Below, piece after piece: positions 2,189-31,450 of a stretch of 64,000 nt of DNA. The DNA lies in contig JBLDXI010000009.1 in NCBI GenBank assembly GCA_047495785.1, positions 1 through 64,000 on the forward strand, in the 5' to 3' direction. Under the pieces are notes generated by a model. That model was not told the DNA's origin. It saw only the letters and a list, made by a program, of their open reading frames with translations, and made no database searches. How positions within the stretch are numbered: the first letter of the stretch is position 1; each line of letters starts with the position of its first letter. The translations under genes were made by a program, and so were the position numbers. Origin of the DNA: Lepidodermella squamata (lineage: Eukaryota; Animalia; Gastrotricha).

Positions 2189-5100
2189 AATTTTTTGAGG
2201 TTTCAAATTTCATCACAAGTTGCTCAATCCTGAACCAAGTCATGAATATTTCACGGAATTAGTACTACAAGGACCGCTGATCGTGAATATCAAGTCACTT
2301 TGCCAGTTGCGTTGACCGAAAAGGTTCCAGAGCGATGCCAAATGACCTATTTCAAAGTTTAAAATTAATTTTTTGAGGTTTCAAATTTCATCACAAGTTG
2401 CTCAATCCTGAACCAAGTCATGAATATTTCTCGGAATTAGTACTACAAGGACCGCCGATCGTGAATATCAAGTCACTTTGCCAGTTGCGTTGACCGAAAA
2501 GGTTCCAGAGCGATGCCAAATGACCTATTTCAAAGTTTAAAATTAATTTTTTGAGGTTTCAAATTTCATCACAAGTTGCTCAATCCTGAACCAAGTCATG
2601 AATATTTCACGGAATTAGTACTACAAGGACCGCTGATCGTGAATATCAAGTCACTTTGCCAGTTGCGTTGACCGAAAAGGTTCCAGTGCGATGCCAAATG
2701 ACCTATTTCGAAGTTGCAAATTAATTTTTTGAGGTTTCAAATTTCATCACAAGTTGCTCAATCCTGAACCAAGTCATGAATATTTCACGGAATTAGTACT
2801 ACAAGGACCGCTGATCGTGAATATCAAGTCACTTTGCCAGTTGCGTTGACCGAAAAGGTTCCAGAGCGATGCCAAATGACCTATTTCGAAGTGTAAAATT
2901 AATTTTTTGAGGTTTCAAATTTCATCACAAGTTGCTCAATCCTGAACCAAGTCATGAATATTTCACGGAATTAGTACTACAAGGACCGCTGATCGTGAAT
3001 ATCAAGTCACTTTGCCAGTTGCGTTGACCGAAAAGGTTCCAGAGCGATGCCAAATGACCTATTTCAAAGTTTAAAATTAATTTTTTGAGGTTTCAAATTT
3101 CATCACAAGTTGCTCAATCCTGAACCAAGTCATGAATATTTCTCGGAATTAGTACTACAAGGACCGCCGATCGTGAATATCAAGTCACTTTGCCAGTTGC
3201 GTTGACCGAAAAGGTTCCAGAGCGATGCCAAATGACCTATTTCAAAGTTTAAAATTAATTTTTTGAGGTTTCAAATTTCATCACAAGTTGCTCAATCCTG
3301 AACCAAGTCATGAATATTTCACGGAATTAGTACTACAAGGACCGCTGATCGTGAATATCAAGTCACTTTGCCAGTTGCGTTGACCGAAAAGGTTCCAGTG
3401 CGATGCCAAATGACCTATTTCGAAGTTGCAAATTAATTTTTTGAGGTTTCAAATTTCATCACAAGTTGCTCAATCCTGAACCAAGTCATGAATATTTCAC
3501 GGAATTAGTACTACAAGGACCGCTGATCGTGAATATCAAGTCACTTTGCCAGTTGCGTTGACCGAAAAGGTTCCAGTGCGATGCCAAATGACCTATTTCG
3601 AAGTTGCAAATTAATTTTTTGAGGTTTCAAATTTCATCACAAGTTGCTCAATCCTGAACCAAGTCATGAATATTTCACGGAATTAGTACTACAAGGACCG
3701 CTGATCGTGAATATCAAGTCACTTTGCCAGTTGCGTTGACCGAAAAGGTTCCAGAGCGATGCCAAATGACCTATTTCGAAGTGTAAAATTAATTTTTTGA
3801 GGTTTCAAATTTCATCACAAGTTGCTCAATCCTGAACCAAGTCATGAATATTTCACGGAATTAGTACTACAAGGACCGCTGATCGTGAATATCAAGTCAC
3901 TTTGCCAGTTGCGTTGACCGAAAAGGTTCCAGAGCGATGCCAAATGACCTATTTCAAAGTTTAAAATTAATTTTTTGAGGTTTCAAATTTCATCACAAGT
4001 TGCTCAATCCTGAACCAAGTCATGAATATTTCTCGGAATTAGTACTACAAGGACCGCCGATCGTGAATATCAAGTCACTTTGCCAGTTGCGTTGACCGAA
4101 AAGGTTCCAGAGCGATGCCAAATGACCTATTTCAAAGTTTAAAATTAATTTTTTGAGGTTTCAAATTTCATCACAAGTTGCTCAATCCTGAACCAAGTCA
4201 TGAATATTTCACGGAATTAGTACTACAAGGACCGCTGATCGTGAATATCAAGTCACTTTGCCAGTTGCGTTGACCGAAAAGGTTCCAGTGCGATGCCAAA
4301 TGACCTATTTCGAAGTTGCAAATTAATTTTTTGAGGTTTCAAATTTCATCACAAGTTGCTCAATCCTGAACCAAGTCATGAATATTTCACGGAATTAGTA
4401 CTACAAGGACCGCTGATCGTGAATATCAAGTCACTTTGCCAGTTGCGTTGACCGAAAAGGTTCCAGAGCGATGCCAAATGACCTATTTCGAAGTGTAAAA
4501 TTAATTTTTTGAGGTTTCAAATTTCATCACAAGTTGCTCAATCCTGAACCAAGTCATGAATATTTCACGGAATTAGTACTACAAGGACCGCTGATCGTGA
4601 ATATCAAGTCACTTTGCCAGTTGCGTTGACCGAAAAGGTTCCAGAGCGATGCCAAATGACCTATTTCAAAGTTTAAAATTAATTTTTTGAGGTTTCAAAT
4701 TTCATCACAAGTTGCTCAATCCTGAACCAAGTCATGAATATTTCTCGGAATTAGTACTACAAGGACCGCCGATCGTGAATATCAAGTCACTTTGCCAGTT
4801 GCGTTGACCGAAAAGGTTCCAGAGCGATGCCAAATGACCTATTTCAAAGTTTAAAATTAATTTTTTGAGGTTTCAAATTTCATCACAAGTTGCTCAATCC
4901 TGAACCAAGTCATGAATATTTCACGGAATTAGTACTACAAGGACCGCTGATCGTGAATATCAAGTCACTTTGCCAGTTGCGTTGACCGAAAAGGTTCCAG
5001 TGCGATGCCAAATGACCTATTTCGAAGTTGCAAATTAATTTTTTGAGGTTTCAAATTTCATCACAAGTTGCTCAATCCTGAACCAAGTCATGAATATTTC

Positions 5101-5251
5101 ACGGAATTAGTACTACAAGGACCGCTGATCGTGAATATCAAGTCACTTTGCCAGTTGCGTTGACCGAAAAGGTTCCAGAGCGATGCCAAATGACCTATTT
5201 CGAAGTGTAAAATTAATTTTTTGAGGTTTCAAATTTCATCACAAGTTGCTC
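2189..5251 (+). repeat. 178-bp satellite block 1 (~17 monomers)
   Basis: Tandem near-identical monomers with four recurrent variants in 4/5-mer higher-order periodicity. Confidence 0.95.
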
Positions 5252-6060
5252 GATGACCGTCTGATATTTAATTTATGACATGGAACTGTTTATATGAGAT
5301 AAAATGATTACGATAATAAATACATTCGACATTTTCAATAAGTCACTAATAAATTATATTATGGGGAAATTTAAATGCTGCACGATAATAAAATAAAGTT
5401 TTTCACGCATGAAATCACGCATTCACGTGATCTTACACACACGCAAAAATTAAGCATGTGGCGCCTGACCTTGCTTGGATAAACGTGGCCTGCTGCCTAT
5501 TTAAGTGCTCAAGCTAGCAGAATAAAATCATTCTTTTGCAAGAGGTAAAAGTCACTGATGAGCTACCCTAGCCAAGTAGCGAAACCGGTCTGATAAAGGC
5601 TACCTCTTAGTTTACGGTTACATTTCATTCATGGTTTATGCAGTTACAATTGCTGGTTTAACTGGTTTAAGCAGTTACAAACGACAACTTTCTTTGGAGT
5701 TTCGGTAATGAACTTGTTTAATTAATGTTTGCGAGTTTATACAGCAGTCCCCCGTGACTATCTAATTATATCGGCGAACCCCTCGTGGTCCTGATATTGA
5801 ATATTATCGGATTAATCTCGCGCGGTTTCCGATCGTTCCATTGTTTGTTCTGATCACTGAGACCACGTTCTCTGGATCGGCTCCCGAGGGAGTAGTGGTA
5901 GGGCCCGGTGTCATTCTCTTCGGAGAATCCCCGGTTTACAGCTCGTCTGTATTAAATCATTACAATAACCCTAACTGATCTTGCCCGTTCGGTACAATGT
6001 ATCACCAAGAAACCAAAGGGGCTGTGAAGGGGAACGAGGTGCTCTTGAGCGAAACCAAAA
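5252..6060 (+). mobile_element. Family-1 pseudo-LTR/3' module, copy 1 (promoter-like motifs, hammerhead, structured region, TAACCCTAAC, 85-bp tail)
   Basis: Unique sequence interrupting the satellite; appears identical to 11282-12090 and nearly identical to 16245-16957; contains a hammerhead core. Confidence 0.85.
5540..5608 (+). ncRNA. Type I hammerhead ribozyme, predicted cleavage after C5590
   Basis: GTCA-CTGATGA-GCTAC(cctagccaa)GTAGC-GAAA-CCG-GTC^TGAT; distal stem AAGAGGTA/TACCTCTT; minimal palindromic stem III (ACCGGT) as in PLE hammerheads. Confidence 0.92.
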
Positions 6061-9000
6061 GACCTATTTCAAAGTTTAAAATTAATTTTTTGAGGTTTCA
6101 AATTTCATCACAAGTTGCTCAATCCTGAACCAAGTCATGAATATTTCACGGAATTAGTACTACAAGGACCGCTGATCGTGAATATCAAGTCACTTTGCCA
6201 GTTGCGTTGACCGAAACACATCTCGTGAGAGTTCAAATGACCTATTTCGAAGTTGCAAATTAATTTTTTGAGGTTTCAAATTTCATCACAAGTTGCTCAA
6301 TCCTGAACCAAGTCATGAATATTTCACGGAATTAGTACTACAAGGACCGCTGATCGTGAATATCAAGTCACTTTGCCAGTTGCGTTGACCGAAAAGGTTC
6401 CAGAGCGATGCCAAATGACCTATTTCAAAGTTTAAAATTAATTTTTTGAGGTTTCAAATTTCATCACAAGTTGCTCAATCCTGAACCAAGTCATGAATAT
6501 TTCTCGGAATTCGTACTACAAGGACCGCTGATCGTGAATATCAAGTCACTTTGCCAGTTGCGTTGACCGAAAAGGTTCCAGAGCGATGCCAAATGACCTA
6601 TTTCGAAGTGTAAAATTAATTTTTTGAGGTTTCAAATTTCATCACAAGTTGCTCAATCCTGAACCAAGTCATGAATATTTCACGGAATTAGTACTACAAG
6701 GACCGCTGATCGTGAATATCAAGTCACTTTGCCAGTTGCGTTGACCGAAAAGGTTCCAGTGCGATGCCAAATGACCTATTTCGAAGTTGCAAATTAATTT
6801 TTTGAGGTTTCAAATTTCATCACAAGTTGCTCAATCCTGAACCAAGTCATGAATATTTCACGGAATTAGTACTACAAGGACCGCTGATCGTGAATATCAA
6901 GTCACTTTGCCAGTTGCGTTGACCGAAAAGGTTCCAGAGCGATGCCAAATGACCTATTTCGAAGTGTAAAATTAATTTTTTGAGGTTTCAAATTTCATCA
7001 CAAGTTGCTCAATCCTGAACCAAGTCATGAATATTTCACGGAATTAGTACTACAAGGACCGCTGATCGTGAATATCAAGTCACTTTGCCAGTTGCGTTGA
7101 CCGAAAAGGTTCCAGAGCGATGCCAAATGACCTATTTCGAAGTTGCAAATTAATTTTTTGAGGTTTCAAATTTCATCACAAGTTGCTCAATCCTGAACCA
7201 AGTCATGAATATCTCTCGGAATTAGTACTACAAGGACCGCCGATCGTGAATATCAAGTCACTTTGCCAGTTGCGTTGACCGAAAAGGTTCCAGAGCGATG
7301 CCAAATGACCTATTTCAAAGTTTAAAATTAATTTTTTGAGGTTTCAAATTTCATCACAAGTTGCTCAATCCTGAACCAAGTCATGAATATTTCTCGGAAT
7401 TAGTACTACAAGGACCGCTGATCGTGAATATCAAGTCACTTTGCCAGTTGCGTTGACCGAAAAGGTTCCAGAGCGATGCCAAATGACCTATTTCGAAGTG
7501 TAAAATTAATTTTTTGAGGTTTCAAATTTCATCACAAGTTGCTCAATCCTGAACCAAGTCATGAATATTTCACGGAATTAGTACTACAAGGACCGCTGAT
7601 CGTGAATATCAAGTCACTTTGCCAGTTGCGTTGACCGAAAAGGTTCCAGAGCGATGCCAAATGACCTATTTCAAAGTTTAAAATTAATTTTTTGAGGTTT
7701 CAAATTTCATCACAAGTTGCTCAATCCTGAACCAAGTCATGAATATTTCTCGGAATTAGTACTACAAGGACCGCCGATCGTGAATATCAAGTCACTTTGC
7801 CAGTTGCGTTGACCGAAAAGGTTCCAGAGCGATGCCAAATGACCTATTTCAAAGTTTAAAATTAATTTTTTGAGGTTTCAAATTTCATCACAAGTTGCTC
7901 AATCCTGAACCAAGTCATGAATATTTCACGGAATTAGTACTACAAGGACCGCTGATCGTGAATATCAAGTCACTTTGCCAGTTGCGTTGACCGAAAAGGT
8001 TCCAGTGCGATGCCAAATGACCTATTTCGAAGTTGCAAATTAATTTTTTGAGGTTTCAAATTTCATCACAAGTTGCTCAATCCTGAACCAAGTCATGAAT
8101 ATTTCACGGAATTAGTACTACAAGGACCGCTGATCGTGAATATCAAGTCACTTTGCCAGTTGCGTTGACCGAAAAGGTTCCAGAGCGATGCCAAATGACC
8201 TATTTCGAAGTGTAAAATTAATTTTTTGAGGTTTCAAATTTCATCACAAGTTGCTCAATCCTGAACCAAGTCATGAATATTTCACGGAATTAGTACTACA
8301 AGGACCGCTGATCGTGAATATCAAGTCACTTTGCCAGTTGCGTTGACCGAAAAGGTTCCAGAGCGATGCCAAATGACCTATTTCAAAGTTTAAAATTAAT
8401 TTTTTGAGGTTTCAAATTTCATCACAAGTTGCTCAATCCTGAACCAAGTCATGAATATTTCTCGGAATTAGTACTACAAGGACCGCCGATCGTGAATATC
8501 AAGTCACTTTGCCAGTTGCGTTGACCGAAAAGGTTCCAGAGCGATGCCAAATGACCTATTTCAAAGTTTAAAATTAATTTTTTGAGGTTTCAAATTTCAT
8601 CACAAGTTGCTCAATCCTGAACCAAGTCATGAATATTTCACGGAATTAGTACTACAAGGACCGCTGATCGTGAATATCAAGTCACTTTGCCAGTTGCGTT
8701 GACCGAAAGGTTCCAGTGCGATGCCAAATGACCTATTTCGAAGTTGCAAATTAATTTTTTGAGGTTTCAAATTTCATCACAAGTTGCTCAATCCTGAACC
8801 AAGTCATGAATATTTCACGGAATTAGTACTACAAGGACCGCTGATCGTGAATATCAAGTCACTTTGCCAGTTGCGTTGACCGAAAAGGTTCCAGTGCGAT
8901 GCCAAATGACCTATTTCGAAGTTGCAAATTAATTTTTTGAGGTTTCAAATTTCATCACAAGTTGCTCAATCCTGAACCAAGTCATGAATATTTCACGGAA

Positions 9001-11281
9001 TTAGTACTACAAGGACCGCTGATCGTGAATATCAAGTCACTTTGCCAGTTGCGTTGACCGAAAAGGTTCCAGAGCGATGCCAAATGACCTATTTCGAAGT
9101 GTAAAATTAATTTTTTGAGGTTTCAAATTTCATCACAAGTTGCTCAATCCTGAACCAAGTCATGAATATTTCACGGAATTAGTACTACAAGGACCGCCGA
9201 TCGTGAATATCAAGTCACTTTGCCAGTTGCGTTGACCGAAAAGGTTCCAGAGCGATGCCAAATGACCTATTTCAAAGTTTAAAATTAATTTTTTGAGGTT
9301 TCAAATTTCATCACAAGTTGCTCAATCCTGAACCAAGTCATGAATATTTCACGGAATTAGTACTACAAGGACCGCTGATCGTGAATATCAAGTCACTTTG
9401 CCAGTTGCGTTGACCGAAAAGGTTCCAGTGCGATGCCAAATGACCTATTTCGAAGTTGCAAATTAATTTTTTGAGGTTTCAAATTTCATCACAAGTTGCT
9501 CAATCCTGAACCAAGTCATGAATATTTCACGGAATTAGTACTACAAGGACCGCTGATCGTGAATATCAAGTCACTTTGCCAGTTGCGTTGACCGAAAAGG
9601 TTCCAGAGCGATGCCAAATGACCTATTTCGAAGTGTAAAATTAATTTTTTGAGGTTTCAAATTTCATCACAAGTTGCTCAATCCTGAACCAAGTCATGAA
9701 TATTTCACGGAATTAGTACTACAAGGACCGCTGATCGTGAATATCAAGTCACTTTGCCAGTTGCGTTGACCGAAAAGGTTCCAGAGCGATGCCAAATGAC
9801 CTATTTCAAAGTTTAAAATTAATTTTTTGAGGTTTCAAATTTCATCACAAGTTGCTCAATCCTGAACCAAGTCATGAATATTTCTCGGAATTAGTACTAC
9901 AAGGACCGCCGATCGTGAATATCAAGTCACTTTGCCAGTTGCGTTGACCGAAAAGGTTCCAGAGCGATGCCAAATGACCTATTTCAAAGTTTAAAATTAA
10001 TTTTTTGAGGTTTCAAATTTCATCACAAGTTGCTCAATCCTGAACCAAGTCATGAATATTTCACGGAATTAGTACTACAAGGACCGCTGATCGTGAATAT
10101 CAAGTCACTTTGCCAGTTGCGTTGACCGAAAAGGTTCCAGTGCGATGCCAAATGACCTATTTCGAAGTTGCAAATTAATTTTTTGAGGTTTCAAATTTCA
10201 TCACAAGTTGCTCAATCCTGAACCAAGTCATGAATATTTCACGGAATTAGTACTACAAGGACCGCTGATCGTGAATATCAAGTCACTTTGCCAGTTGCGT
10301 TGACCGAAAAGGTTCCAGTGCGATGCCAAATGACCTATTTCGAAGTTGCAAATTAATTTTTTGAGGTTTCAAATTTCATCACAAGTTGCTCAATCCTGAA
10401 CCAAGTCATGAATATTTCACGGAATTAGTACTACAAGGACCGCTGATCGTGAATATCAAGTCACTTTGCCAGTTGCGTTGACCGAAAAGGTTCCAGAGCG
10501 ATGCCAAATGACCTATTTCGAAGTGTAAAATTAATTTTTTGAGGTTTCAAATTTCATCACAAGTTGCTCAATCCTGAACCAAGTCATGAATATTTCACGG
10601 AATTAGTACTACAAGGACCGCTGATCGTGAATATCAAGTCACTTTGCCAGTTGCGTTGACCGAAAAGGTTCCAGAGCGATGCCAAATGACCTATTTCAAA
10701 GTTTAAAATTAATTTTTTGAGGTTTCAAATTTCATCACAAGTTGCTCAATCCTGAACCAAGTCATGAATATTTCTCGGAATTAGTACTACAAGGACCGCC
10801 GATCGTGAATATCAAGTCACTTTGCCAGTTGCGTTGACCGAAAAGGTTCCAGAGCGATGCCAAATGACCTATTTCAAAGTTTAAAATTAATTTTTTGAGG
10901 TTTCAAATTTCATCACAAGTTGCTCAATCCTGAACCAAGTCATGAATATTTCACGGAATTAGTACTACAAGGACCGCTGATCGTGAATATCAAGTCACTT
11001 TGCCAGTTGCGTTGACCGAAAAGGTTCCAGTGCGATGCCAAATGACCTATTTCGAAGTTGCAAATTAATTTTTTGAGGTTTCAAATTTCATCACAAGTTG
11101 CTCAATCCTGAACCAAGTCATGAATATTTCACGGAATTAGTACTACAAGGACCGCTGATCGTGAATATCAAGTCACTTTGCCAGTTGCGTTGACCGAAAA
11201 GGTTCCAGAGCGATGCCAAATGACCTATTTCGAAGTGTAAAATTAATTTTTTGAGGTTTCAAATTTCATCACAAGTTGCTC
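6061..11281 (+). repeat. 178-bp satellite block 2 (~29 monomers)
   Basis: Same monomer; one 1-nt deletion near 8707; barcode overwrite at 6216-6232. Confidence 0.95.
6216..6232 (+). other. Barcode bc1003 replacing satellite sequence
   Basis: The equivalent position at 12246 reads AAGGTTCCAGTGCGATG; here a same-length barcode sits in its place. Confidence 0.8.
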
Positions 11282-12090
11282 GATGACCGTCTGATATTTA
11301 ATTTATGACATGGAACTGTTTATATGAGATAAAATGATTACGATAATAAATACATTCGACATTTTCAATAAGTCACTAATAAATTATATTATGGGGAAAT
11401 TTAAATGCTGCACGATAATAAAATAAAGTTTTTCACGCATGAAATCACGCATTCACGTGATCTTACACACACGCAAAAATTAAGCATGTGGCGCCTGACC
11501 TTGCTTGGATAAACGTGGCCTGCTGCCTATTTAAGTGCTCAAGCTAGCAGAATAAAATCATTCTTTTGCAAGAGGTAAAAGTCACTGATGAGCTACCCTA
11601 GCCAAGTAGCGAAACCGGTCTGATAAAGGCTACCTCTTAGTTTACGGTTACATTTCATTCATGGTTTATGCAGTTACAATTGCTGGTTTAACTGGTTTAA
11701 GCAGTTACAAACGACAACTTTCTTTGGAGTTTCGGTAATGAACTTGTTTAATTAATGTTTGCGAGTTTATACAGCAGTCCCCCGTGACTATCTAATTATA
11801 TCGGCGAACCCCTCGTGGTCCTGATATTGAATATTATCGGATTAATCTCGCGCGGTTTCCGATCGTTCCATTGTTTGTTCTGATCACTGAGACCACGTTC
11901 TCTGGATCGGCTCCCGAGGGAGTAGTGGTAGGGCCCGGTGTCATTCTCTTCGGAGAATCCCCGGTTTACAGCTCGTCTGTATTAAATCATTACAATAACC
12001 CTAACTGATCTTGCCCGTTCGGTACAATGTATCACCAAGAAACCAAAGGGGCTGTGAAGGGGAACGAGGTGCTCTTGAGCGAAACCAAAA
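11282..12090 (+). mobile_element. Family-1 pseudo-LTR/3' module, copy 2
   Basis: Direct repeat of 5252-6060 at +6030 bp. Confidence 0.85.
11570..11638 (+). ncRNA. Type I hammerhead ribozyme, cleavage after C11620
   Basis: Identical to 5540-5608. Confidence 0.92.
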
Positions 12091-15000: not shown

Positions 15001-16244
15001 TCCTGAACCAAGTCATGAATATTTCACGGAATTAGTACTACAAGGACCGCTGATCGTGAATATCAAGTCACTTTGCCAGTTGCGTTGACCGAAAAGGTTC
15101 CAGAGCGATGCCAAATGACCTATTTCAAAGTTTAAAATTAATTTTTTGAGGTTTCAAATTTCATCACAAGTTGCTCAATCCTGAACCAAGTCATGAATAT
15201 TTCACGGAATTAGTACTACAAGGACCGCTGATCGTGAATATCAAGTCACTTTGCCAGTTGCGTTGACCGAAAAGGTTCCAGAGCGATGCCAAATGACCTA
15301 TTTCAAAGTATAAAATTAATTTTTTGAGGTTTCAAATTGCATCACAAGTTGCTCAATCCTGAACCAAGTCATGAATATTTCACGGAATTAGTACTACAAG
15401 GACCGCTGATCGTGAATATCAAGTCACTTTGCCAGTTGCGTTGACCGAAAAGGTTCCAGAGCGATGCCAAATGACCTATTTCAAAGTATAAAATTAATTT
15501 TTTGAGGTTTCAAATTGCATCACAAGTTGCTCAATCCTGAACCAAGTCATGAATATTTCACGGAATTAGTACTACAAGGACCGCTGATCGTGAATATCAA
15601 GTCACTTTGCCAGTTGCGTTGACCGAAAAGGTTCCAGAGCGATGCCAAATGACCTATTTCAAAGTATAAAATTAATTTTTTGAGGTTTCAAATTGCATCA
15701 CAAGTTGCTCAATCCTGAACCAAGTCATGAATATTTCACGGAATTAGTACTACAAGGACCGCTGATCGTGAATATCAAGTCACTTTGCCAGTTGCGTTGA
15801 CCGAAAAGGTTCCAGAGCGATGCCAAATGACCTATTTCAAAGTATAAAATTAATTTTTTGAGGTTTCAAATTTCATCACAAGTTGCTCAATCCTGAACCA
15901 AGTCATGAATATTTCACGGAATTAGTACTACAAGGACCGCTGATCGTGAATATCAAGTCACTTTGCCAGTTGCGTTGACCGAAAAGGTTCCAGAGCGATG
16001 CCAAATGACCTATTTCAAAGTATAAAATTAATTTTTTGAGGTTTCAAATTTCATCACAAGTTGCTCAATCCTGAACCAAGTCATGAATATTTCACGGAAT
16101 TAGTACTACAAGGACCGCTGATCGTGAATATCAAGTCACTTTGCCAGTTGCGTTGACCGAAAAGGTTCCAGAGCGATGCCAAATGACCTATTTCAAAGTT
16201 TAAAATTAATTTTTTGAGGTTTCAAATTTCATCACAAGCTGCTC
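12091..16244 (+). repeat. 178-bp satellite block 3 (~23 monomers)
   Basis: Same monomer, with block-specific variants (AAAGTATAAA, AAATTGCATC, CGAGGTTTAA). Confidence 0.95.
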
Positions 16245-16525: not shown

Positions 16526-16531
16526 TTTTGC

Positions 16532-18109: not shown

Positions 18110-18164
18110 GTAAGTTAAAACTTCTTACCTCCGTCTAATAGACTTAAAATTATAATTTGAATAG

Positions 18165-20308: not shown

Positions 20309-20866
20309 ATGGTAAAAGGTAACAATCCTAATGTAGCATGGCTCGCTGATCAAGCGGAGGAGGATGTAACAACGAAGTACAGCGATTCATCTGAGGCCTC
20401 TTCCTTAGAAGAATCGGAGAATGACGCCGCAAATACGGCTTTGATCACAAGTAGCAACATCGACCCTACAACTCTAAACCTGATTAGTACACCGCGAATG
20501 AACCTGGCAAGTCACAGTAACTCAACACCGGGTTGCTCAAAATCAAACACCAATACACCTATCGCCTTGAGTCAGAAGAGAAAACGATCTTATGGTTTAC
20601 CTAATGAATCCTACGAACCAGTTAGTCAAAAAGCAAAACGAGAACTAGACTGGTGGGGAAAGATGCAAGAATCGCCACAAGCCTCAAAAATCATGGTATT
20701 CACGAAACTCGGACCGAAACGCTACGGATGTTGCGTCACTGACTGCGATGAAGAACGCCAGCGAGTCGACGGTATGGAAAACCACTTTTTGAACGATCAC
20801 CCTGACCTCTTAGGGATGGCCAAAACACTGATCGCGTTGCGAGATCTGAACAAAAAAGCTAAATAA
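20309..20866 (+). CDS. ORF3 of the PLE: acidic/Ser-rich N-terminus, NLS-like KRKR, C-terminal C2H2 zinc finger
   Basis: 185-aa ATG ORF; C-x4-C-x12-H-x4-H (CCVTDC...HFLNDH); AATAAA at ~20900. Confidence 0.7.
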   Translation: MVKGNNPNVAWLADQAEEDVTTKYSDSSEASSLEESENDAANTALITSSNIDPTTLNLISTPRMNLASHSNSTPGCSKSNTNTPIALSQKRKRSYGLPNESYEPVSQKAKRELDWWGKMQESPQASKIMVFTKLGPKRYGCCVTDCDEERQRVDGMENHFLNDHPDLLGMAKTLIALRDLNKKAK

Positions 20867-21106
20867 GTTGTAGCTCACCTATGCTCTCTGATATGGACAA
20901 ATAAAACGTGAAAAGAGAATGGTACAGTATCTGTAAAACACCGCAACACGGATAACAAATACGAAACTTCACAAACGTAACAAGGCAACGAATGGGAAAC
21001 ATTAAATCAGAACATGTCAAGTTTTACTTAACTCAGATATTAATAGCTAAAACTTGTCAAATTCAAAATAAAAATTATTCTCTTGATCTCACCCCAGTTT
21101 CCATTA

Positions 21107-24100
21107 AAAGCAAGTCCATGGTACTTCTGAGTCCTACGAGTCCGAATATGGTACCAGATTTACGAAGGAATCTCGGGAAAAGATTCCAGGTCGATTTTAG
21201 ATGGCCAATTCTGAAAATTTTGGACCTTTCAAATTTTTCTGAAATTTTTCGGATCTCCGTGCTTTTATCGATGGAAAGCAAGTCCATGGTACTTCTGAGT
21301 CCTACGAGTCCGAATATGGTACCAGATTTACGAAGGAATCTCGGGAAAAGATTCCAGGTCGATTTTAGATGGCCAATTCTGAAAATTTTGGACCTTTCAA
21401 ATTTTTCTGAAATTTTTCGGATCTCCGTGCTTTTATCGATGGAAAGCAAGTCCATGGTACTTCTGAGTCCTACGAGTCCGAATATGGTACCAGATTTACG
21501 AAGGAATCTCGGGAAAAGATTCCAGGTCGATTTTAGATGGCCAATTCTGAAAATTTTGGACCTTTCAAATTTTTATGAAATTTTTCGGATCTCCGTGCTT
21601 TTTTCGATTGAAAGCAAGTCCATGGTACTTCTGAGTCCTACGAGTCCGAATATGGTACCAGATTTACGAAGGAATCTCGGGAAAAGATTCCAGGTCGATT
21701 TTAGATGGCCAATTCTGAAAATTTTGGACCTTTCAAATTTTTCTGAAATTTTTCGGATCTCCGTGCTTTTATCGATGGAAAGCAAGTCCATGGTACTTCT
21801 GAGTCCTACGAGTCCGAATATGGTACCAGATTTACGAAGGAATCTCGGGAAAAGATTCCAGGTCGATTTTAGATGGCCAATTCTGAAAATTTTGGACCTT
21901 TCAAATTTTTCTGAAATTTTTCGGATCTCCGTGTTTTTTTCGATTGAAAGCAAGTCCATGGTACTTCTGAGTCCTACGAGTCCGAATATGGTACCAGATT
22001 TACGAAGGAATCTCGGGAAAAGATTCCAGGTCGATTTTAGATGGCCAATTCTGAAAATTTTGGACCTTTCAAATTTTTCTGAAATTTTTCGGATCTCCGT
22101 GCTTTTATCGATGGAAAGCAAGTCCATGGTACTTCTGAGTCCTACGAGTCCGAATATGGTACCAGATTTACGAAGGAATCTCGGGAAAAGATTCCAGGTC
22201 GATTTTAGATGGCCAATTCTGAAAATTTTGGACCTTTCAAATTTTTCTGAAATTTTTCGGATCTCCGTGCTTTTATCGATGGAAAGCAATTCCATGGTAC
22301 TTCTCAGTCCTACGAGTCCGAATATGGTACCAGATTTACGAAGGAATCTCGGGAAAAGATTCCAGGTCGATTTTAGATGGCCAATTCTGAAAATTTTGGA
22401 CCTTTCAAATTTTTATGAAATTTTTCGGATCTCCGTGCTTTTTTCGATTGAAAGCAAGTCCATGGTACTTCTGAGTCCTACGAGTCCGAATATGGTACCA
22501 GATTTACGAAGGAATCTCGGGAAAAGATTCCAGGTCGATTTTAGATAGCCAATTCTGAAAATTTTGGACCTTTCAAATTTTTCTGAAATTTTTCGAATCT
22601 CCGTGCTTTTATCGATGGAAAGCAATTCCATGGTACTTCTGAGTCCTACGAGTCCGAATATGGTACCAGATTTACGAAGGAATCTCGGGAAAAGATTCCA
22701 GGTCGATTTTAGATGGCCAATTCTGAAAATTTTGGACCTTTCAAATTTTTATGAAATTTTTCGGATCTCCGTGCTTTTTTCGATTGAAAGCAAGTCCATG
22801 GTACTTCTGAGTCCTACGAGTCCGAATATGGTACCAGATTTACGAAGGAATCTCGGGAAAAGATTCCAGGTCGATTTTAGATGGCCAATTCTGAAAATTT
22901 TGGACCTTTCAAATTTTTCTGAAATTTTTCGGATCTCCGTGCTTTTATCGATGGAAAGCAAGTCCATGGTACTTCTGAGTCCTACGAGTCCGAATATGGT
23001 ACCAGATTTACGAAGGAATCTCGGGAAAAGATTCCAGGTCGATTTTAGATGGCCAATTCTGAAAATTTTGGACCTTTCAAATTTTTATGAAATTTTTCGG
23101 ATCTCCGTGTTTTTTTCGATTGAAAGCAAGTCCATGGTACTTCTGAGTCCTACGAGTCCGAATATGGTACCAGATTTACGAAGGAATCTCGGGAAAAGAT
23201 TCCAGGTCGATTTTAGATGGCCAATTCTGAAAATTTTGGACCTTTCAAATTTTTCTGAAATTTTTCGGATCTCCGTGCTTTTATCGATGGAAAGCAAGTC
23301 CATGGTACTTCTGAGTCCTACGAGTCCGAATATGGTACCAGATTTACGAAGGAATCTCGGGAAAAGATTCCAGGTCGATTTTAGATGGCCAATTCTGAAA
23401 ATTTTGGACCTTTCAAATTTTTATGAAATTTTTCGGATCTCCGTGCTTTTATCGATGGAAAGCAAGTCCATGGTACTTCTGAGTCCCACGAGTCCGAATA
23501 TGGTACCAGATTTACGAAGGAATCTCGGGAAAAGATTCCAGGTCGATTTTAGATGGCCAATTCTGAAAATTTTGGACCTTTCAAATTTTTATGAAATTTT
23601 TCGGATCTCCCTGCTTTTTTCGATTGAAAGCAAGTCCATGGTACTTCTGAGTCCTACGAGTCCGAATATGGTACCAGATTTACGAAGGAATCTCGGGAAA
23701 AGATTCCAGGTCGATTTTAGATGGCCAATTCTGAAAATTTTGGACCTTTCAAATTTTTATGAAATTTTTCGGATCTCCGTGTTTTTTTCGATTGAAAGCA
23801 AGTCCATGGTACTTCTGAGTCCTACGAGTCCGAATATGGTACCAGATTTACGAAGGAATCTCGGGAAAAGATTCCAGGTCGATTTTAGATGGCCAATTCT
23901 GAAAATTTTGGACCTTTCAAATTTTTATGAAATTTTTCGGATCTCCGTGTTTTTTTCGATTGAAAGCAAGTCCATGGTACTTCTGAGTCCTACGAGTCCG
24001 AATATGGTACCAGATTTACGAAGGAATCTCGGGAAAAGAATCCAGGTCGATTTTAGATGGCCAATTCTGAAAATTTTGGACCTTTCAAATTTTTATGAAA

Positions 24101-27100
24101 TTTTTCGGATCCCCGTGTTTTTTTCGATTGAAAGCAAGTCCATGGTACTTCTGAGTCCTACGAGTCCGAATATGGTACCAGATTTACGAAGGAATCTCGG
24201 GAAAAGATTCCAGGTCGATTTTAGATGGCCAATTCTGAAAATTTTGGACCTTTCAAATTTTTCTGAAATTTTTCGGATCTCCGTGCTTTTTTCGATTGAA
24301 AGCAAGTCCATGGTACTTCTGAGTCCTACGAGTCCGAATATGGTACCAGATTTACGAAGGAATCTCGGGAAAAGATTCCAGGTCGATTTTAGATGGCCAA
24401 TTCTGAAAATTTTGGACCTTTCAAATTTTTATGAAATTTTTCGGATCTCCGTGTTTTTTTCGATTGAAAGCAAGTCCATGGTACTTCTGAGTCCTACGAG
24501 TCCGAATATGGTACCAGATTTACGAAGGAATCTCGGGAAAAGATTCCAGGTCGATTTTAGATGGCCAATTCTGAAAATTTTGGACCTTTCAAATTTTTCT
24601 GAAATTTTTCGGATCTCCGTGTTTTTTTCGATTGAAAGCAAGTCCATGGTACTTCTGAGTCCTACGAGTCCGAATATGGTACCAGATTTACGAAGGAATC
24701 TCGGGAAAAGATTCCAGGTCGATTTTAGATGGCCAATTCTGAAAATTTTGGACCTTTCAAATTTTTATGAAATTTTTCGGATCTCCGTGCTTTTATCGAT
24801 GGAAAGCAAGTCCATGGTACTTCTGAGTCCCACGAGTCCGAATATGGTACCAGATTTACGAAGGAATCTCGGGAAAAGATTCCAGGTCGATTTTAGATGG
24901 CCAATTCTGAAAATTTTGGACCTTTCAAATTTTTATGAAATTTTTCGGATCTCCGTGCTTTTATCGATGGAAAGCAAGTCCATGGTACTTCTGAGTCCTA
25001 CGAGTCCGAATATGGTACCAGATTTACGAAGGAATCTCGGGAAAAGATTCCAGGTCGATTTTAGATGGCCAATTCTGAAAATTTTGGACCTTTCAAATTT
25101 TTATGAAATTTTTCGGATCTCCGTGCTTTTATCGATTGAAAGCAAGTCCATGGTACTTCTGAGTCCTACGAGTCCGAATATGGTACCAGATTTACGAAGG
25201 AATCTCGGGAAAAGATTCCAGGTCGATTTTAGATGGCCAATTCTGAAAATTTTGGACCTTTCAAATTTTTATGAAATTTTTCGGATCTCCGTGTTTTTTT
25301 CGATTGAAAGCAAGTCCATGGTACTTCTGAGTCCTACGAGTCCGAATATGGTACCAGATTTACGAAGGAATCTCGGGAAAAGATTCCAGGTCGATTTTAG
25401 ATGGCCAATTCTGAAAATTTTGGACCTTTCAAATTTTTCTGAAATTTTTCGGATCTCCGTGCTTTTTTCGATTGAAAGCAAGTCCATGGTACTTCTGAGT
25501 CCTACGAGTCCGAATATGGTACCAGATTTACGAAGGAATCTCGGGAAAAGATTCCAGGTCGATTTTAGATGGCCAATTCTGAAAATTTTGGACCTTTCAA
25601 ATTTTTCTGAAATTTTTCGGATCTCCGTGCTTTTATCGATGGAAAGCAAGTCCATGGTACTTCTGAGTCCTACGAGTCCGAATATGGTACCAGATTTACG
25701 AAGGAATCTCGGGAAAAGATTCCAGGTCGATTTTAGATGGCCAATTCTGAAAATTTTGGACCTTTCAAATTTTTATGAAATTTTTCGGATCTCCGTGTTT
25801 TTTTCGATTGAAAGCAAGTCCATGGTACTTCTGAGTCCTACGAGTCCGAATATGGTACCAGATTTACGAAGGAATCTCGGGAAAAGATTCCAGGTCGATT
25901 TTAGATGGCCAATTCTGAAAATTTTGGACCTTTCAAATTTTTATGAAATTTTTCGGATCTCCGTGTTTTTTTCGATTGAAAGCAAGTCCATGGTACTTCT
26001 GAGTCCTACGAGTCCGAATATGGTACCAGATTTACGAAGGAATCTCGGGAAAAGATTCCAGGTCGATTTTAGATGGCCAATTCTGAAAATTTTGGACCTT
26101 TCAAATTTTTATGAAATTTTTCGGATCTCCGTGTTTTTTTCGATTGAAAGCAAGTCCATGGTACTTCTGAGTCCTACGAGTCCGAATATGGTACCAGATT
26201 TACGAAGGAATCTCGGGAAAAGATTCCAGGTCGATTTTAGATGGCCAATTCTGAAAATTTTGGACCTTTCAAATTTTTCTGAAATTTTTCGGATCTCCGT
26301 GCTTTTTTCGATTGAAAGCAAGTCCATGGTACTTCTGAGTCCTACGAGTCCGAATATGGTACCAGATTTACGAAGGAATCTCGGGAAAAGATTCCAGGTC
26401 GATTTTAGATGGCCAATTCTGAAAATTTTGGACCTTTCAAATTTTTATGAAATTTTTCGGATCTCCGTGCTTTTATCGATGGAAAGCAAGTCCATGGTAC
26501 TTCTGAGTCCTACGAGTCCGAATATGGTACCAGATTTACGAAGGAATCTCGGGAAAAGATTCCAGGTCGATTTTAGATGGCCAATTCTGAAAATTTTGGA
26601 CCTTTCAAATTTTTCTGAAATTTTTCGGATCTCCGTGCTTTTTTCGATTGAAAGCAAGTCCATGGTACTTCTGAGTCCTACGAGTCCGAATATGGTACCA
26701 GATTTACGAAGGAATCTCGGGAAAAGATTCCAGGTCGATTTTAGATGGCCAATTCTGAAAATTTTGGACCTTTCAAATTTTTCTGAAATTTTTCGGATCT
26801 CCGTGCTTTTATCGATGGAAAGCAAGTCCATGGTACTTCTGAGTCCTACGAGTCCGAATATGGTACCAGATTTACGAAGGAATCTCGGGAAAAGATTCCA
26901 GGTCGATTTTAGATGGCCAATTCTGAAAATTTTGGACCTTTCAAATTTTTATGAAATTTTTCGGATCTCCGTGTTTTTTTCGATTGAAAGCAAGTCCATG
27001 GTACTTCTGAGTCCTACGAGTCCGAATATGGTACCAGATTTACGAAGGAATCTCGGGAAAAGATTCCAGGTCGATTTTAGATGGCCAATTCTGAAAATTT

Positions 27101-30100
27101 TGGACCTTTCAAATTTTTATGAAATTTTTCGGATCTCCGTGTTTTTTTCGATTGAAAGCAAGTCCATGGTACTTCTGAGTCCTACGAGTCCGAATATGGT
27201 ACCAGATTTACGAAGGAATCTCGGGAAAAGATTCCAGGTCGATTTTAGATGGCCAATTCTGAAAATTTTGGACCTTTCAAATTTTTATGAAATTTTTCGG
27301 ATCTCCGTGTTTTTTTCGATTGAAAGCAAGTCCATGGTACTTCTGAGTCCTACGAGTCCGAATATGGTACCAGATTTACGAAGGAATCTCGGGAAAAGAT
27401 TCCAGGTCGATTTTAGATGGCCAATTCTGAAAATTTTGGACCTTTCAAATTTTTCTGAAATTTTTCGGATCTCCGTGCTTTTTTCGATTGAAAGCAAGTC
27501 CATGGTACTTCTGAGTCCTACGAGTCCGAATATGGTACCAGATTTACGAAGGAATCTCGGGAAAAGATTCCAGGTCGATTTTAGATGGCCAATTCTGAAA
27601 ATTTTGGACCTTTCAAATTTTTATGAAATTTTTCGGATCTCCGTGCTTTTATCGATGGAAAGCAAGTCCATGGTACTTCTGAGTCCTACGAGTCCGAATA
27701 TGGTACCAGATTTACGAAGGAATCTCGGGAAAAGATTCCAGGTCGATTTTAGATGGCCAATTCTGAAAATTTTGGACCTTTCAAATTTTTCTGAAATTTT
27801 TCGGATCTCCGTGCTTTTTTCGATTGAAAGCAAGTCCATGGTACTTCTGAGTCCTACGAGTCCGAATATGGTACCAGATTTACGAAGGAATCTCGGGAAA
27901 AGATTCCAGGTCGATTTTAGATGGCCAATTCTGAAAATTTTGGACCTTTCAAATTTTTATGAAATTTTTCGGATCTCCGTGCTTTTATCGATGGAAAGCA
28001 AGTCCATGGTACTTCTGAGTCCCACGAGTCCGAATATGGTACCAGATTTACGAAGGAATCTCGGGAAAAGATTCCAGGTCGATTTTAGATGGCCAATTCT
28101 GAAAATTTTGGACCTTTCAAATTTTTATGAAATTTTTCGGATCTCCGTGCTTTTATCGATGGAAAGCAAGTCCATGGTACTTCTGAGTCCTACGAGTCCG
28201 AATATGGTACCAGATTTACGAAGGAATCTCGGGAAAAGATTCCAGGTCGATTTTAGATGGCCAATTCTGAAAATTTTGGACCTTTCAAATTTTTATGAAA
28301 TTTTTCGGATCTCCGTGCTTTTATCGATTGAAAGCAAGTCCATGGTACTTCTGAGTCCTACGAGTCCGAATATGGTACCAGATTTACGAAGGAATCTCGG
28401 GAAAAGATTCCAGGTCGATTTTAGATGGCCAATTCTGAAAATTTTGGACCTTTCAAATTTTTATGAAATTTTTCGGATCTCCGTGTTTTTTTCGATTGAA
28501 AGCAAGTCCATGGTACTTCTGAGTCCTACGAGTCCGAATATGGTACCAGATTTACGAAGGAATCTCGGGAAAAGATTCCAGGTCGATTTTAGATGGCCAA
28601 TTCTGAAAATTTTGGACCTTTCAAATTTTTCTGAAATTTTTCGGATCTCCGTGCTTTTTTCGATTGAAAGCAAGTCCATGGTACTTCTGAGTCCTACGAG
28701 TCCGAATATGGTACCAGATTTACGAAGGAATCTCGGGAAAAGATTCCAGGTCGATTTTAGATGGCCAATTCTGAAAATTTTGGACCTTTCAAATTTTTCT
28801 GAAATTTTTCGGATCTCCGTGCTTTTATCGATGGAAAGCAAGTCCATGGTACTTCTGAGTCCTACGAGTCCGAATATGGTACCAGATTTACGAAGGAATC
28901 TCGGGAAAAGATTCCAGGTCGATTTTAGATGGCCAATTCTGAAAATTTTGGACCTTTCAAATTTTTATGAAATTTTTCGGATCTCCGTGTTTTTTTCGAT
29001 TGAAAGCAAGTCCATGGTACTTCTGAGTCCTACGAGTCCGAATATGGTACCAGATTTACGAAGGAATCTCGGGAAAAGATTCCAGGTCGATTTTAGATGG
29101 CCAATTCTGAAAATTTTGGACCTTTCAAATTTTTATGAAATTTTTCGGATCTCCGTGTTTTTTTCGATTGAAAGCAAGTCCATGGTACTTCTGAGTCCTA
29201 CGAGTCCGAATATGGTACCAGATTTACGAAGGAATCTCGGGAAAAGATTCCAGGTCGATTTTAGATGGCCAATTCTGAAAATTTTGGACCTTTCAAATTT
29301 TTATGAAATTTTTCGGATCTCCGTGCTTTTATCGATGGAAAGCAAGTCCATGGTACTTCTGAGTCCTACGAGTCCGAATATGGTACCAGATTTACGAAGG
29401 AATCTCGGGAAAAGATTCCAGGTCGATTTTAGATGGCCAATTCTGAAAATTTTGGACCTTTCAAATTTTTATGAAATTTTTCGGATCTCCGTGCTTTTAT
29501 CGATTGAAAGCAAGTCCATGGTACTTCTGAGTCCTACGAGTCCGAATATGGTACCAGATTTACGAAGGAATCTCGGGAAAAGATTCCAGGTCGATTTTAG
29601 ATGGCCAATTCTGAAAATTTTGGACCTTTCAAATTTTTATGAAATTTTTCGGATCTCCGTGTTTTTTTCGATTGAAAGCAAGTCCATGGTACTTCTGAGT
29701 CCTACGAGTCCGAATATGGTACCAGATTTACGAAGGAATCTCGGGAAAAGATTCCAGGTCGATTTTAGATGGCCAATTCTGAAAATTTTGGACCTTTCAA
29801 ATTTTTCTGAAATTTTTCGGATCTCCGTGCTTTTTTCGATTGAAAGCAAGTCCATGGTACTTCTGAGTCCTACGAGTCCGAATATGGTACCAGATTTACG
29901 AAGGAATCTCGGGAAAAGATTCCAGGTCGATTTTAGATGGCCAATTCTGAAAATTTTGGACCTTTCAAATTTTTCTGAAATTTTTCGGATCTCCGTGCTT
30001 TTATCGATGGAAAGCAAGTCCATGGTACTTCTGAGTCCTACGAGTCCGAATATGGTACCAGATTTACGAAGGAATCTCGGGAAAAGATTCCAGGTCGATT

Positions 30101-30645
30101 TTAGATGGCCAATTCTGAAAATTTTGGACCTTTCAAATTTTTATGAAATTTTTCGGATCTCCGTGTTTTTTTCGATTGAAAGCAAGTCCATGGTACTTCT
30201 GAGTCCTACGAGTCCGAATATGGTACCAGATTTACGAAGGAATCTCGGGAAAAGATTCCAGGTCGATTTTAGATGGCCAATTCTGAAAATTTTGGACCTT
30301 TCAAATTTTTATGAAATTTTTCGGATCTCCGTGTTTTTTTCGATTGAAAGCAAGTCCATGGTACTTCTGAGTCCTACGAGTCCGAATATGGTACCAGATT
30401 TACGAAGGAATCTCGGGAAAAGATTCCAGGTCGATTTTAGATGGCCAATTCTGAAAATTTTGGACCTTTCAAATTTTTCTGAAATTTTTCGGATCTCCGT
30501 GCTTTTATCGATGGAAAGCAAGTCCATGGTACTTCTGAGTCCTACGAGTCCGAATATGGTACCAGATTTACGAAGGAATCTCGGGAAAAGATTCCAGGTC
30601 GATTTTAGATGGCCAATTCTGAAAATTTTGGACATTTCAAATTTT
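21107..30645 (+). repeat. 168-bp satellite (~57 monomers) inside the PLE
   Basis: Period 168 bp, no indels seen, few recurrent SNP variants. Confidence 0.97.
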
Positions 30646-30948
30646 GGATCAACTCCTTGGATTTTTATGTTTACCCCGATTTTTTAATTGGAGCAGAATC
30701 TGTAGGGACTCCTTAGCACGAATATCAACATTTTAAACGGTCATGATTGAAAACGGAAACGCTGTAATAAGAATTAAAGTTTAAAGAAAAAATGTAATTT
30801 TGGCACCAGATGTGCCCTGAAAAACATGTTTTGTTTCGTCATTAACTAATCGCGTGCGCCACATGCGCCACTACGACTCAGTCTGTTACGCTCATTCAAT
30901 TTATCAAAGCCTTTAAAAGGCATTAAAATCGTATACAAATTTATTATT

Positions 30949-31019
30949 GAGGTTTTAAATGTCACTGATGAGCTACCTTAGCCAAGTAGCGAAACCGGTC
31001 TGACAATTAGGCTAACCTC
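30949..31019 (+). ncRNA. Type I hammerhead ribozyme (family 2), cleavage after C31000
   Basis: GTCA-CTGATGA-GCTAC(cttagccaa)GTAGC-GAAA-CCG-GTC^TGAC; distal stem GAGGTT/AACCTC. Confidence 0.92.
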
Positions 31020-31107
31020 TTATATTCACTCTTCCTCATGCTACCTTTACCTCTTGGATCCTAAAAAAAAAAAAATTATAGGAACCTAGGTTACTTACCG
31101 CTATTTA

Positions 31108-31219
31108 ACGGGCGCCTCCCAGGAGCGTGGTACGTTAGTTGGTGGACGGGCGCCTCTTCGGAGTGTGGTACGTCGGGTTATGGATGAGACGCGCGCCTCT
31201 ACGGAGTGTGGAACGTCTC
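31108..31219 (+). ncRNA. Three tandem hairpin modules (two with UNCG tetraloops) in the PLE 3' region
   Basis: GCGCCTC-(CCAG/TTCG/TACG)-GAGYGTGG, closed by AACG/CGTT, GACG/CGTC and GAGACG/CGTCTC. Confidence 0.6.
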
Positions 31220-31340
31220 GGTCACTGTCTCCTTAACAGAGCAGGACCTATGATGAGCTTTGCTTTTGGAAGATAATCCTGATTAGGATTCCTTGCCGGG
31301 GATTTCGAAATAAGAAACCCGACTGGTAACTACTTTTGAT

Positions 31341-31346
31341 CTAACC

Positions 31347-31387
<41 letters not shown>

Positions 31388-31450
31388 CCCTAACCCTAAC
31401 CCTAACCCTAACCCTAACCCCAACCCTAACCCTAACCCTAACCCTAACCC
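31341..31450 (-). repeat. Telomeric repeat tract (TTAGGG)~18, the proximal attachment site
   Basis: (CTAACC)n with two variant units (CTAAACC, CCAACC). Confidence 0.97.

Follow-up and report, generated by a model that had tools for sequence, protein, structure and literature searches.

Penelope-like elements (PLEs) that lack an endonuclease (EN) are the closest retroelement relatives of telomerase. In two published accounts, Athena elements and Terminons are described as bearing reverse-complement telomeric repeats at the 3' end, carrying a hammerhead, undergoing telomeric 5' truncation and forming head-to-tail arrays (PMC8557442, PMC6431247); Athena is presented there as rotifer-specific (PMC8557442), and the rotifer telomere repeat is TGTGGG (PMC7943196). 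Here, the first 64 kb of contig C9 (GenBank JBLDXI010000009.1; 5.65 Mb) from the genome assembly of the gastrotrich Lepidodermella squamata (GCA_047495785.1; 121 Mb in 151 contigs), referred to below as the window, were analysed. The first 31 kb of this contig were found to consist of a head-to-tail stack of an EN-less Penelope-like element, encoding its own reverse transcriptase (RT), and protein-less relatives of this element. The stack is best explained by repeated terminal addition of EN-less Penelope-like retroelements in alternation with telomerase, a reading to which we assign a probability of roughly two in three. The whole analysis is based on one assembly, and the one public DNA run that contains the locus is perhaps the source of that assembly.

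Within this stack, a module composed of a satellite array, a hammerhead motif, a further 340-376 nt and a stretch of CCCTAA was observed four times in a single orientation, namely as three non-coding units (A, B and C) filled with a 178-bp satellite (sat178) and as one RT-bearing unit filled with a 168-bp satellite (sat168). Each module ends in ...AA directly followed by CCCTAA, so that a fixed nucleotide joins the TTAGGG repeats, and the bulk of each unit is made up of its own satellite (Table 1). The first-pass annotation of this DNA, whose coordinates for the satellites, open reading frames (ORFs), hammerhead and CCCTAA tracts were found to hold, had recognized the order of the module correctly and had counted it twice instead of four times. 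It had also described the 178-bp satellite as one array; the satellite, which spans 2183-16244, was instead resolved into three units parted by full tails of ~715 bp (5251-5965 and 11281-11995), each with its own hammerhead.

Table 1. Features of the terminal stack of contig C9, with positions in the window
Feature	Position	Strand	Remarks
17-mer ACACATCTCGTGAGAGT	1..17	.	Probable sequencing adapter or barcode remnant; also in the telomere tract of C13
Inverted sat178 copy (foldback)	18..2194	-	100% reverse complement of 2361-4537 over 2177 nt
sat178 array, unit A	2183..5251	+	17.2 monomers, array cut by the foldback; TRF period 178, 98% matches
tail1, unit A	5251..5975	+	~290 nt before the hammerhead; hammerhead 5542-5606, predicted cleavage after 5590; 376-nt terminal region; AACCCTAAC at 5967-5975
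71-nt leader, 5' end of unit B	5976..6046	+	Continues into a diverged first monomer at 6047
sat178 array, unit B	6047..11281	+	29.4 monomers; start and end phase match the other arrays
tail1, unit B	11281..12005	+	Hammerhead 11572-11636; terminal AACCCTAAC at 11997-12005
Leader, unit C	12006..12076	+	Aligned with the other leader
sat178 array, unit C	12077..16244	+	23.4 monomers, each 98-100% identical to the consensus
tail1, unit C	16244..16958	+	Hammerhead 16534-16598, predicted cleavage after 16582; class I module TGGTAGGGCCCGG + hairpin + CCCCGGTTTACAGCTCGTCTGT
Telomere tract (CCCTAA)15	16959..17048	+	Separates unit C from the RT element; ends ...CCCTAACCC
5' untranslated region of the RT element	17049..17192	+	Starts directly after the telomere tract
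ORF1-RT gene	17193..20161	+	Exons 17193-17633, 17680-18109 and 18165-20161; predicted open frame of 955 amino acids
ORF3 (185 amino acids)	20309..20866	+	Ends in a single zinc-finger-like motif, C-X4-C-X12-H-X4-H
sat168 array	21098..30645	+	56.8 monomers, 98-100% identical to the consensus, between ORF3 and the hammerhead; TRF 98% matches
tail2	30646..31341	+	~300 nt before the hammerhead; hammerhead 30949-31019, predicted cleavage after 31000; hairpin repeats 31108-31217; class II module GCCGGGG...CCGACTGGTAA
Innermost telomere tract (CCCTAA)~18	31342..31450	+	Adjoins unique host DNA

When this stack was compared with Athena elements and Terminons as portrayed in the accounts cited above, the shared features comprised a PLE-type RT without a GIY-YIG endonuclease domain, an ORF1 upstream of the RT, a position at chromosome termini, 3' reverse-complement telomeric repeats, a hammerhead in the 3' region, copies whose 5' part has been cut off at short stretches of telomeric repeat and an organization in head-to-tail arrays. 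Conversely, the host is not a rotifer and has TTAGGG rather than TGTGGG repeats, two thirds of the RT-bearing element consist of a homogeneous 168-bp satellite, and the element is accompanied by protein-less, satellite-filled partners. Moreover, unlike Terminons, it carries no accessory ORFs (exonuclease, esterase, Rep and others), encoding only ORF1-RT and an ORF3 with a single zinc finger, its extra length being satellite, and its hammerhead is positioned 340-376 nt upstream of the telomere complement with a conserved terminal hairpin module in between. The likeness to Athena is one of element features. A search of one literature library found no paper on telomere-attaching PLEs dominated by satellite arrays.

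The coding capacity of the RT-bearing element is confined to 17193-20866. ORF1a, ORF1b and the RT ORF are located in three different frames, and predicted splicing of two GTAAG...AG mini-introns (17634-17679, 46 nt; 18110-18164, 55 nt) would join them into a stop-free frame of 955 amino acids (aa), which is RG-rich at its N-terminus and comprises a helical part belonging to ORF1 as well as a PLE reverse transcriptase without EN. On contig C57, a relative has an uninterrupted 944-aa ORF with which this spliced frame aligns collinearly. The second mini-intron is missing from the relatives on C13 and C57, where the ORF is continuous. An independent Logan contig, derived from the sole public run with this DNA, covers 17060-21136 with 0 differences, and the frame changes in ORF1-RT are therefore not assembly errors.

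The 640-aa RT ORF was shown to match RVT_1 (E = 2.9e-8) and to contain the motifs DKGNTIVALD and FIYFLPKLHK, corresponding to the PLE hallmarks DKG and YFLPKLHK. Besides RVT_1, its relatives contain DUF8422 and HTH_animal, two Pfam families of PLE type, and 266 library proteins match the RT at E <= 1e-30. A GIY-YIG domain was absent at E <= 1 from ORF1a, ORF1b, the RT, ORF3 and the full 944-aa ORF of the C57 relative, and was likewise not found at this threshold in two other telomeric families (C19/C26 and C21/C46); the positive control, the EN-bearing PLE L029 of the same genome, scored above the Pfam cut-off. The initial designation as an EN-less PLE reverse transcriptase was thus borne out by RVT_1, by the PLE motifs and by the lack of GIY-YIG at either end. 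The element is also distinct from Naiad and Chlamys PLEs, which possess an N-terminal GIY-YIG domain and a CxC linker, as no GIY-YIG domain was detected in its N-terminal 290 aa or in full-length relatives. EN-bearing PLEs of this genome (L029, C24:4307784-4311920; L030, C13:1589889-1594037) are located far from contig ends, and L029 is associated with a different hammerhead (GGCAC.../GUGCC helix II) that is present on both strands.

ORF3, for which no Pfam match was obtained, is homologous to the ORF3 of the C13 element (E = 2e-5). Its zinc-finger-like motif has been preserved on C13 and C57, in relatives with 25% identity, and the DG..HF core of the motif is also kept in other organisms. Of the four junctions named in the first-pass annotation (17048, 21107, 30645 and 31341), the one between ORF3 and the satellite was compared with independent data, and the Logan contig bridges it by 38 nt. 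Two separate insertions, one of the RT element and one of the sat168 unit, were considered and rejected, as neither a telomere 9-mer nor a tail was found between ORF3 and the array. Since the class II module of tail2 is shared with the RT-bearing relatives on C13 and C57, it is argued that the ORFs, sat168 and tail2 belong together, and 17049-31341 is treated here as one element or one chimeric complementary DNA.

Rfam searches of the window yielded no match at the gathering threshold and, at a lax E-value, reported a single hammerhead (30947-31022) with 24 bits against a gathering threshold of 52, leaving the tail1 copies unreported. In a covariation test of the canonical type-I structure on nine distinct loci of this genome, 99% of cells were shown to pair and five pairs exhibited compensatory changes, a result reached by 0 of 500 shuffles, with slid controls pairing at <=38%. 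No variation was seen in the cores CUGAUGA and GAAA or in the GUC triplet, the distal helix I shifts from GAGGUA/UACCUC through GAGGUU/AACCUC to GCAAC/GUUGC, and helix III is represented by the short palindrome ACCGGU. Such a short palindromic helix III is the metazoan type-I form, which is thought to act as a dimer (PMC4209133). These data support the classification of the motif as a type I hammerhead (Rfam HH9, metazoan type) and a putative ribozyme; the hammerheads noted initially are accordingly upheld by covariation, though not by Rfam score. The hammerhead would probably process read-through multi-unit transcripts as a dimer. It is separated from each array by ~300 nt, and its distance to the telomere complement, 340-376 nt in the window, increases to ~860 nt in the RT elements of C13.

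The 340-376 nt downstream of the hammerhead had been regarded as a structured region, a view that was not sustained for the region as a whole, since it folds no better than shuffled sequences (z = 0.12 and -0.89). Only local hairpins are conserved there, in the form of a terminal hairpin module, and the last ~90 nt of the tails sort into classes. Class I, found in tail1 and others, is composed of TGGT[A/T]GGGCCCGG, a hairpin of 5-6 bp with a different sequence in each of six families, and CCCCGGTTT[A/G]CAGCTCGTCTGT. The TGGT[A/T]GGGCCCGG box and the hairpin that follows it are also present in an element of another organism with an RT ~41% identical, in which the downstream block has diverged. 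This element, on an ENA metagenome contig (L084:4715-4854), ends in GGTGGTAGGGCCCGG, which corresponds to the terminal box of tail1, followed by a hairpin and (CCCTAA)9; no hammerhead was found on the L084 contig. Class II, GCCGGGG...CYGWCTGGTA, is represented by tail2 and the RT-bearing relatives on C13 and C57, and RNAalifold revealed no convincing structure for this module. Upstream of it, tail2 contains three 43-nt repeats (31108-31217), which fold into small hairpins that resemble each other and have CAGG, UUCG or UACG as their loop, and related hairpins were also observed in the C20 tail.

In the non-coding part of the stack, the two inner tails (units A and B) end exactly in AACCCTAAC and are followed by a 71-nt leader and then by the next array. 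Identical copies of the leader are present at 12006-12076 and on contig C21, and in a diverged family (C13:20709-20760) the same AACCCTAAC junction is succeeded by a homologous leader. The non-coding units are 4.9-6.0 kb long and differ from each other by 0.6-2%. Among the four full tails, three haplotypes were distinguished: those of units A and B show 0 differences, that of unit C differs from A/B at 15 positions, and the full tail on C21 differs from the other haplotypes by 9 and 14 positions.

Genome-wide mapping confirmed that both satellites are confined to these elements, with sat168 being present at this locus only and sat178 being limited to C9 and C21:2659038-2661250, where in every case the same leader and tail1 flank it. 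The word depth of sat168 in the Logan set (~1160-2255 versus 18.3) fits ~60 copies, so that no large hidden array exists. The array edges are diverged partial monomers, and neither a telomere tract nor an element end was detected inside any array. The copy numbers of the uncut sat178 arrays all end in.4, indicating that, between fixed boundaries, array length varies by whole monomers. Compared directly, sat178 and sat168 exhibit a weak likeness (66% over 71 nt), and their kinship is visible only via diverged arrays on C13. Related non-coding units on that contig contain ~3 kb of old 178-bp monomers, 60-70% alike, and were copied as whole blocks with 91-94% identity, which makes arrays of such a period an inherited, mobile part of the family rather than an invaded host subtelomere. 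A 2707-aa 'ORF' (22564-30687) runs through sat168, one frame of the 168-nt monomer (56 codons) being free of stops; it lacks a family match and is probably meaningless.

Other contig ends were read, C13 over positions 1-38500 less 503 bases and C55 and C57 in part. Close relatives of the RT (50-55% identity) were identified on C13 (5-12 kb from its start), C57 and C20, and more distant EN-less families on C21, C46 and C54. All copies of this hammerhead variant (12/12) and the close RT relatives are located within ~40 kb of contig ends with their 3' end inward, being encoded on the + strand at left ends (C9, C13, C20 and C41) and on the - strand at right ends (C21, C38 and C54); other tail and RT matches on C32, C46, C55 and C57 obey the same rule. 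The proposed Athena/Terminon polarity, with the sense sequence on the C-rich strand, is thereby found at a dozen contig ends. In four other samples, RT relatives are followed downstream on the sense strand by CCCTAA repeats, not by the rotifer repeat CCCACA. One internal fragment (L028, C15:3519577-3519756), 88% identical to the last 60 aa of the RT, is situated 1.7 Mb from the nearer contig end, with short runs of TTAGGG and further element tails beside it, and may be left over from a former chromosome end.

Contig C13 opens with ~135 CCCTAA repeats, followed by a chain comparable to that of C9. At the right end of C21, read in element orientation from the outside, (CCCTAA)26 is followed by tail1[494-714], AACCCTAAC-T-leader, a sat178 array of 12.4 monomers, a full tail1, (CCCTAA)10, tail1[529-714], (CCCTAA)15 and another PLE. 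In this order, the same 3' nucleotide meets telomere repeats before a different proximal neighbour, and two 5'-truncated tail1 copies with different cut points are capped by telomere repeats; copies on C20 and C54 begin at or just inside the hammerhead. Furthermore, head-to-tail junctions keep exactly AACCCTAAC, whereas among the junctions between a tract and a following 5' end on C9 and C13 eight end in ...CCCTAACCC and a ninth (C13 ~15707) ends in CCCC; three such junctions on C21 also end in CCC. This constant phase is consistent with telomerase adding GGG first to each newly made DNA end. The alternation of telomerase with retrotransposition is supported by the telomere tracts between units, by the 5'-truncated telomere-capped copies at other ends and by a TERT gene in the genome. 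The telomerase RBD domain was matched at C21:879202-879639 (63.9 bits), with one in-frame TGA in the match that is perhaps due to an intron.

A mechanism for such terminal addition can be outlined as follows. The stack is made up of one autonomous element (17049-31341) and at least three protein-less relatives, each composed of leader, sat178 array and tail1. In element RNA, the conserved terminal hairpin module would be closely followed on its 3' side by a short telomere complement (AACCCUAAC), and this AACCCUAAC stretch would pair with the TTAGGG 3' overhang, which may then prime reverse transcription by the RT of the element. The new DNA end would be a copy of the 5' end of the element or of its truncation point, telomerase would re-cap it, GGG first, and the cycle would repeat. 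The satellites, in this scheme, would be internal arrays derived from the elements' own sequence, moving with the elements between fixed boundaries and not forming part of the host subtelomere, with array length drifting thereafter by whole monomers. It was probably through unequal exchange at the DNA level that unit A or B was gained and that the arrays became homogeneous.

Several observations weigh against this reading. In the nearest RT relatives, on C13, on C57 and in another organism (L083, where the hammerhead follows ORF3 after 19 nt), ORF3 and the hammerhead are not separated by an array. With one copy each of the RT element and of sat168 in the genome, the passage of the sat168 array through an RNA is a supposition; the locus is present in one public DNA run and in no public RNA run. 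The sat178 array of C21 is 97.6-98.0% identical to those of C9 in every register, so that registers were not told apart. The hammerhead is 340-376 nt away from the telomere complement, not adjacent to it as in Terminons (PMC6431247). No telomere tract is present at the start of C9, the first 2.2 kb of which form a perfect foldback. Lastly, no difference was found between the tails or the leaders of units A and B, and C13:21070-26810 and C13:26811-32551 represent a 5741-bp tandem duplicate with one mismatch (99.98%), which together show that DNA-level duplication is at work in these chains. The C13 duplicate, a DNA-level or assembly duplication, includes two telomere tracts of identical length in both copies; besides these tracts of 11 and 8 repeats, it holds a non-coding unit and a small two-monomer element (L065, L041, L066 and L040).

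A more far-reaching proposal is that the elements constitute a portable subtelomere. According to this proposal, nucleosome-length arrays would be carried in the RNAs of telomere-attaching PLEs, laid on chromosome ends by reverse transcription and capped by telomerase, being seeded and moved between ends through RNA, while the terminal RNA module (UGGUAGGGCCCGG, hairpin and CCCUAAC) would serve as a handle for the RT and as a template-like docking site for the primer. We advance it tentatively, at clearly less than even odds. The delivery of satellites through RNA, as put forward in the first-pass annotation, is supported only in part, being favoured by the recurrence of sat178 together with its tail at a second contig end and disfavoured by the single-copy state of the RT element and by its array-less nearest relatives; similarly, the other RT copies were mapped to contig ends, as anticipated, though the closest of them lack the array.

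The alternative that deserves most attention is that only progenitors with short arrays or none were retrotransposed, and that the long arrays and the chain itself arose later in place through slippage, unequal sister-chromatid exchange and break-induced replication from interstitial telomere tracts. It would account for the array-less state of the closest autonomous relatives, for arrays that are 98-100% homogeneous and differ by whole monomers, for the identical tails and leaders of units A and B and for the C13 duplicate with its equal-length tracts; break-induced replication primed in a TTAGGG tract would also place the same 3' nucleotide next to different proximal flanks. It is more difficult to reconcile with sat178 occurring at two contig ends between the same leader and tail, with tail haplotypes that differ at 9-15 positions, with solo 5'-truncated tails between telomere tracts, and with the diverged arrays of the sister family having been copied several times as intact blocks. 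In addition, break-induced replication alone copies everything distal, yet C21 departs from C9 at tail position 494, which is at a telomere cap. On balance, we consider in-place growth of this kind unlikely, though a serious contender.

For the sat178 units, an origin as giant retrozyme-like elements can be envisaged, in which hammerhead dimers would cut transcripts spanning several units to unit length, the resulting RNAs being circularised and copied by rolling-circle reverse transcription from the internal CCCUAAC. Known animal non-LTR (non-long-terminal-repeat) retrozymes are tandem non-coding units of 170-400 nt that give rise to circular RNAs and are viewed as PLE passengers (PMC7229834; bioRxiv 10.64898/2026.07.22.740005). 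The sat178 units share with them the tandem, non-coding organization and the single type-I hammerhead per unit with a minimal palindromic helix III, ACCGGU (PMC4209133). Copying from a circle would explain tandem units with the constant junction tail-AACCCTAAC-T-leader, which is identical in C9 (twice) and C21, is kept in the diverged C13 family and is out of phase with the telomerase-made tracts, and internal initiation by an RT has been shown for a PLE in vitro (PMC11167929). However, the units are 4.9-6.0 kb long, consist of ribozyme-free monomers, have telomere-complement ends and occur only at chromosome ends; their array lengths differ and the tails of units C and B are distinguished by 15 positions, so that a single circle was not the source of them all. 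The junction could equally well be due to a template jump or to inheritance from an ancestral element, and we judge the retrozyme-like origin improbable.

Nucleosome-length subtelomeric satellites are common in eukaryotes, and, given that arrays make up most of the region, the satellites might be pre-existing host sequences in or beside which the elements landed later. This possibility, which is already largely refuted and to which we give very little credence, is contradicted by the absence of either satellite without its element, with word depth matching the assembled copy number, by arrays that always lie within the same leader and tail boundaries without an internal telomere tract or element end, and by homologous diverged arrays in the same position in related elements. 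Equally slight is the chance that the chain is mainly an assembly artefact of collapsed or chimeric satellite reads at a contig end, as the perfect 2.2-kb foldback, the adapter-like 17-mer and the identical A and B tails might suggest, given that the independent Logan contig is exact over 17060-21136 and bridges into sat168, that the units differ by 0.6-2%, and that the same modules and junction types recur with consistent polarity at about a dozen other contig ends. Terminal addition of EN-less PLEs in alternation with telomerase accordingly continues to be preferred for the stack.

The foldback at the contig start meets the forward array in a 12-nt palindrome, AAAATTAATTTT, and is likely a library or assembly artefact, or else a very recent palindrome- or hairpin-type event at a DNA end. 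The 17-mer that precedes it, ACACATCTCGTGAGAGT, which may be a PacBio barcode, also interrupts the terminal CCCTAA tract of contig C13 at ~1117-1133 (L064); it is probably an untrimmed barcode or adapter and would as such mark read ends built into the assembly. Together, foldback and 17-mer indicate that C9 stops short of the terminal telomere tract, and the contig start would represent a chromosome end on the grounds of contig position and polarity. At the other side of the stack, DNA to the right of 31450 is unique; it lacks telomere-like repeats and does not resemble other chromosome ends. A tRNA-like appearance was noted beside the innermost tract; no tRNA was found there. Host animal genes, encoding THOC5, a Brix-domain protein, a glyoxalase and a Cys-loop channel, are present from ~37 kb onwards.

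Satellites born from transposon-internal repeats are a general phenomenon, exemplified by pvB370/pDv of Drosophila virilis. The arrays described here resemble these in having grown from the element's own sequence, with diverged partial monomers at the edges, and differ from them in that the array has not left its telomere-attaching retroelement and is restricted to one or two chromosome ends. Coprina elements of fungi, protists and plants are likewise EN-less and telomere-associated, many of their hosts having TTAGGG-type telomeres (PMC8557442, PMC4209133). In contrast to the hammerheads of fungal and protist PLEs, which work as monomers and possess a long helix III (PMC4209133), helix III is here of the short palindromic metazoan type, and the host genes are of animal type; it is by these features that the element is set apart from Coprina. 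The HeT-A, TART and TAHRE elements of Drosophila similarly form terminal head-to-tail arrays of autonomous and non-autonomous copies, with variable 5' truncation and the 3' end centromere-ward (PMC5537684, PMC13534243). These are non-LTR elements of the jockey clade in a host without telomerase, whereas in L. squamata telomerase tracts alternate with PLE-type elements.

What is new here is a known way of building chromosome ends, found in a non-rotifer host with TTAGGG telomeres and in a satellite-filled form. An Athena-like lifestyle in an animal with ordinary TTAGGG telomeres and TERT was observed at about a dozen contig ends, and telomerase and retroelements are consequently seen to alternate at the same ends. 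The elements bring together three subjects that tend to be studied separately, namely retrotransposition targeted to telomeres, non-coding passengers that bear a hammerhead, and the origin of nucleosome-length satellites. Their fixed junctions, the constant GGG-first phase of telomerase and the conserved terminal hairpin module provide directly testable handles. If it is true that the arrays travel through RNA, these elements would offer a concrete mechanism for the origin of subtelomeric satellites and for their spread between chromosomes.

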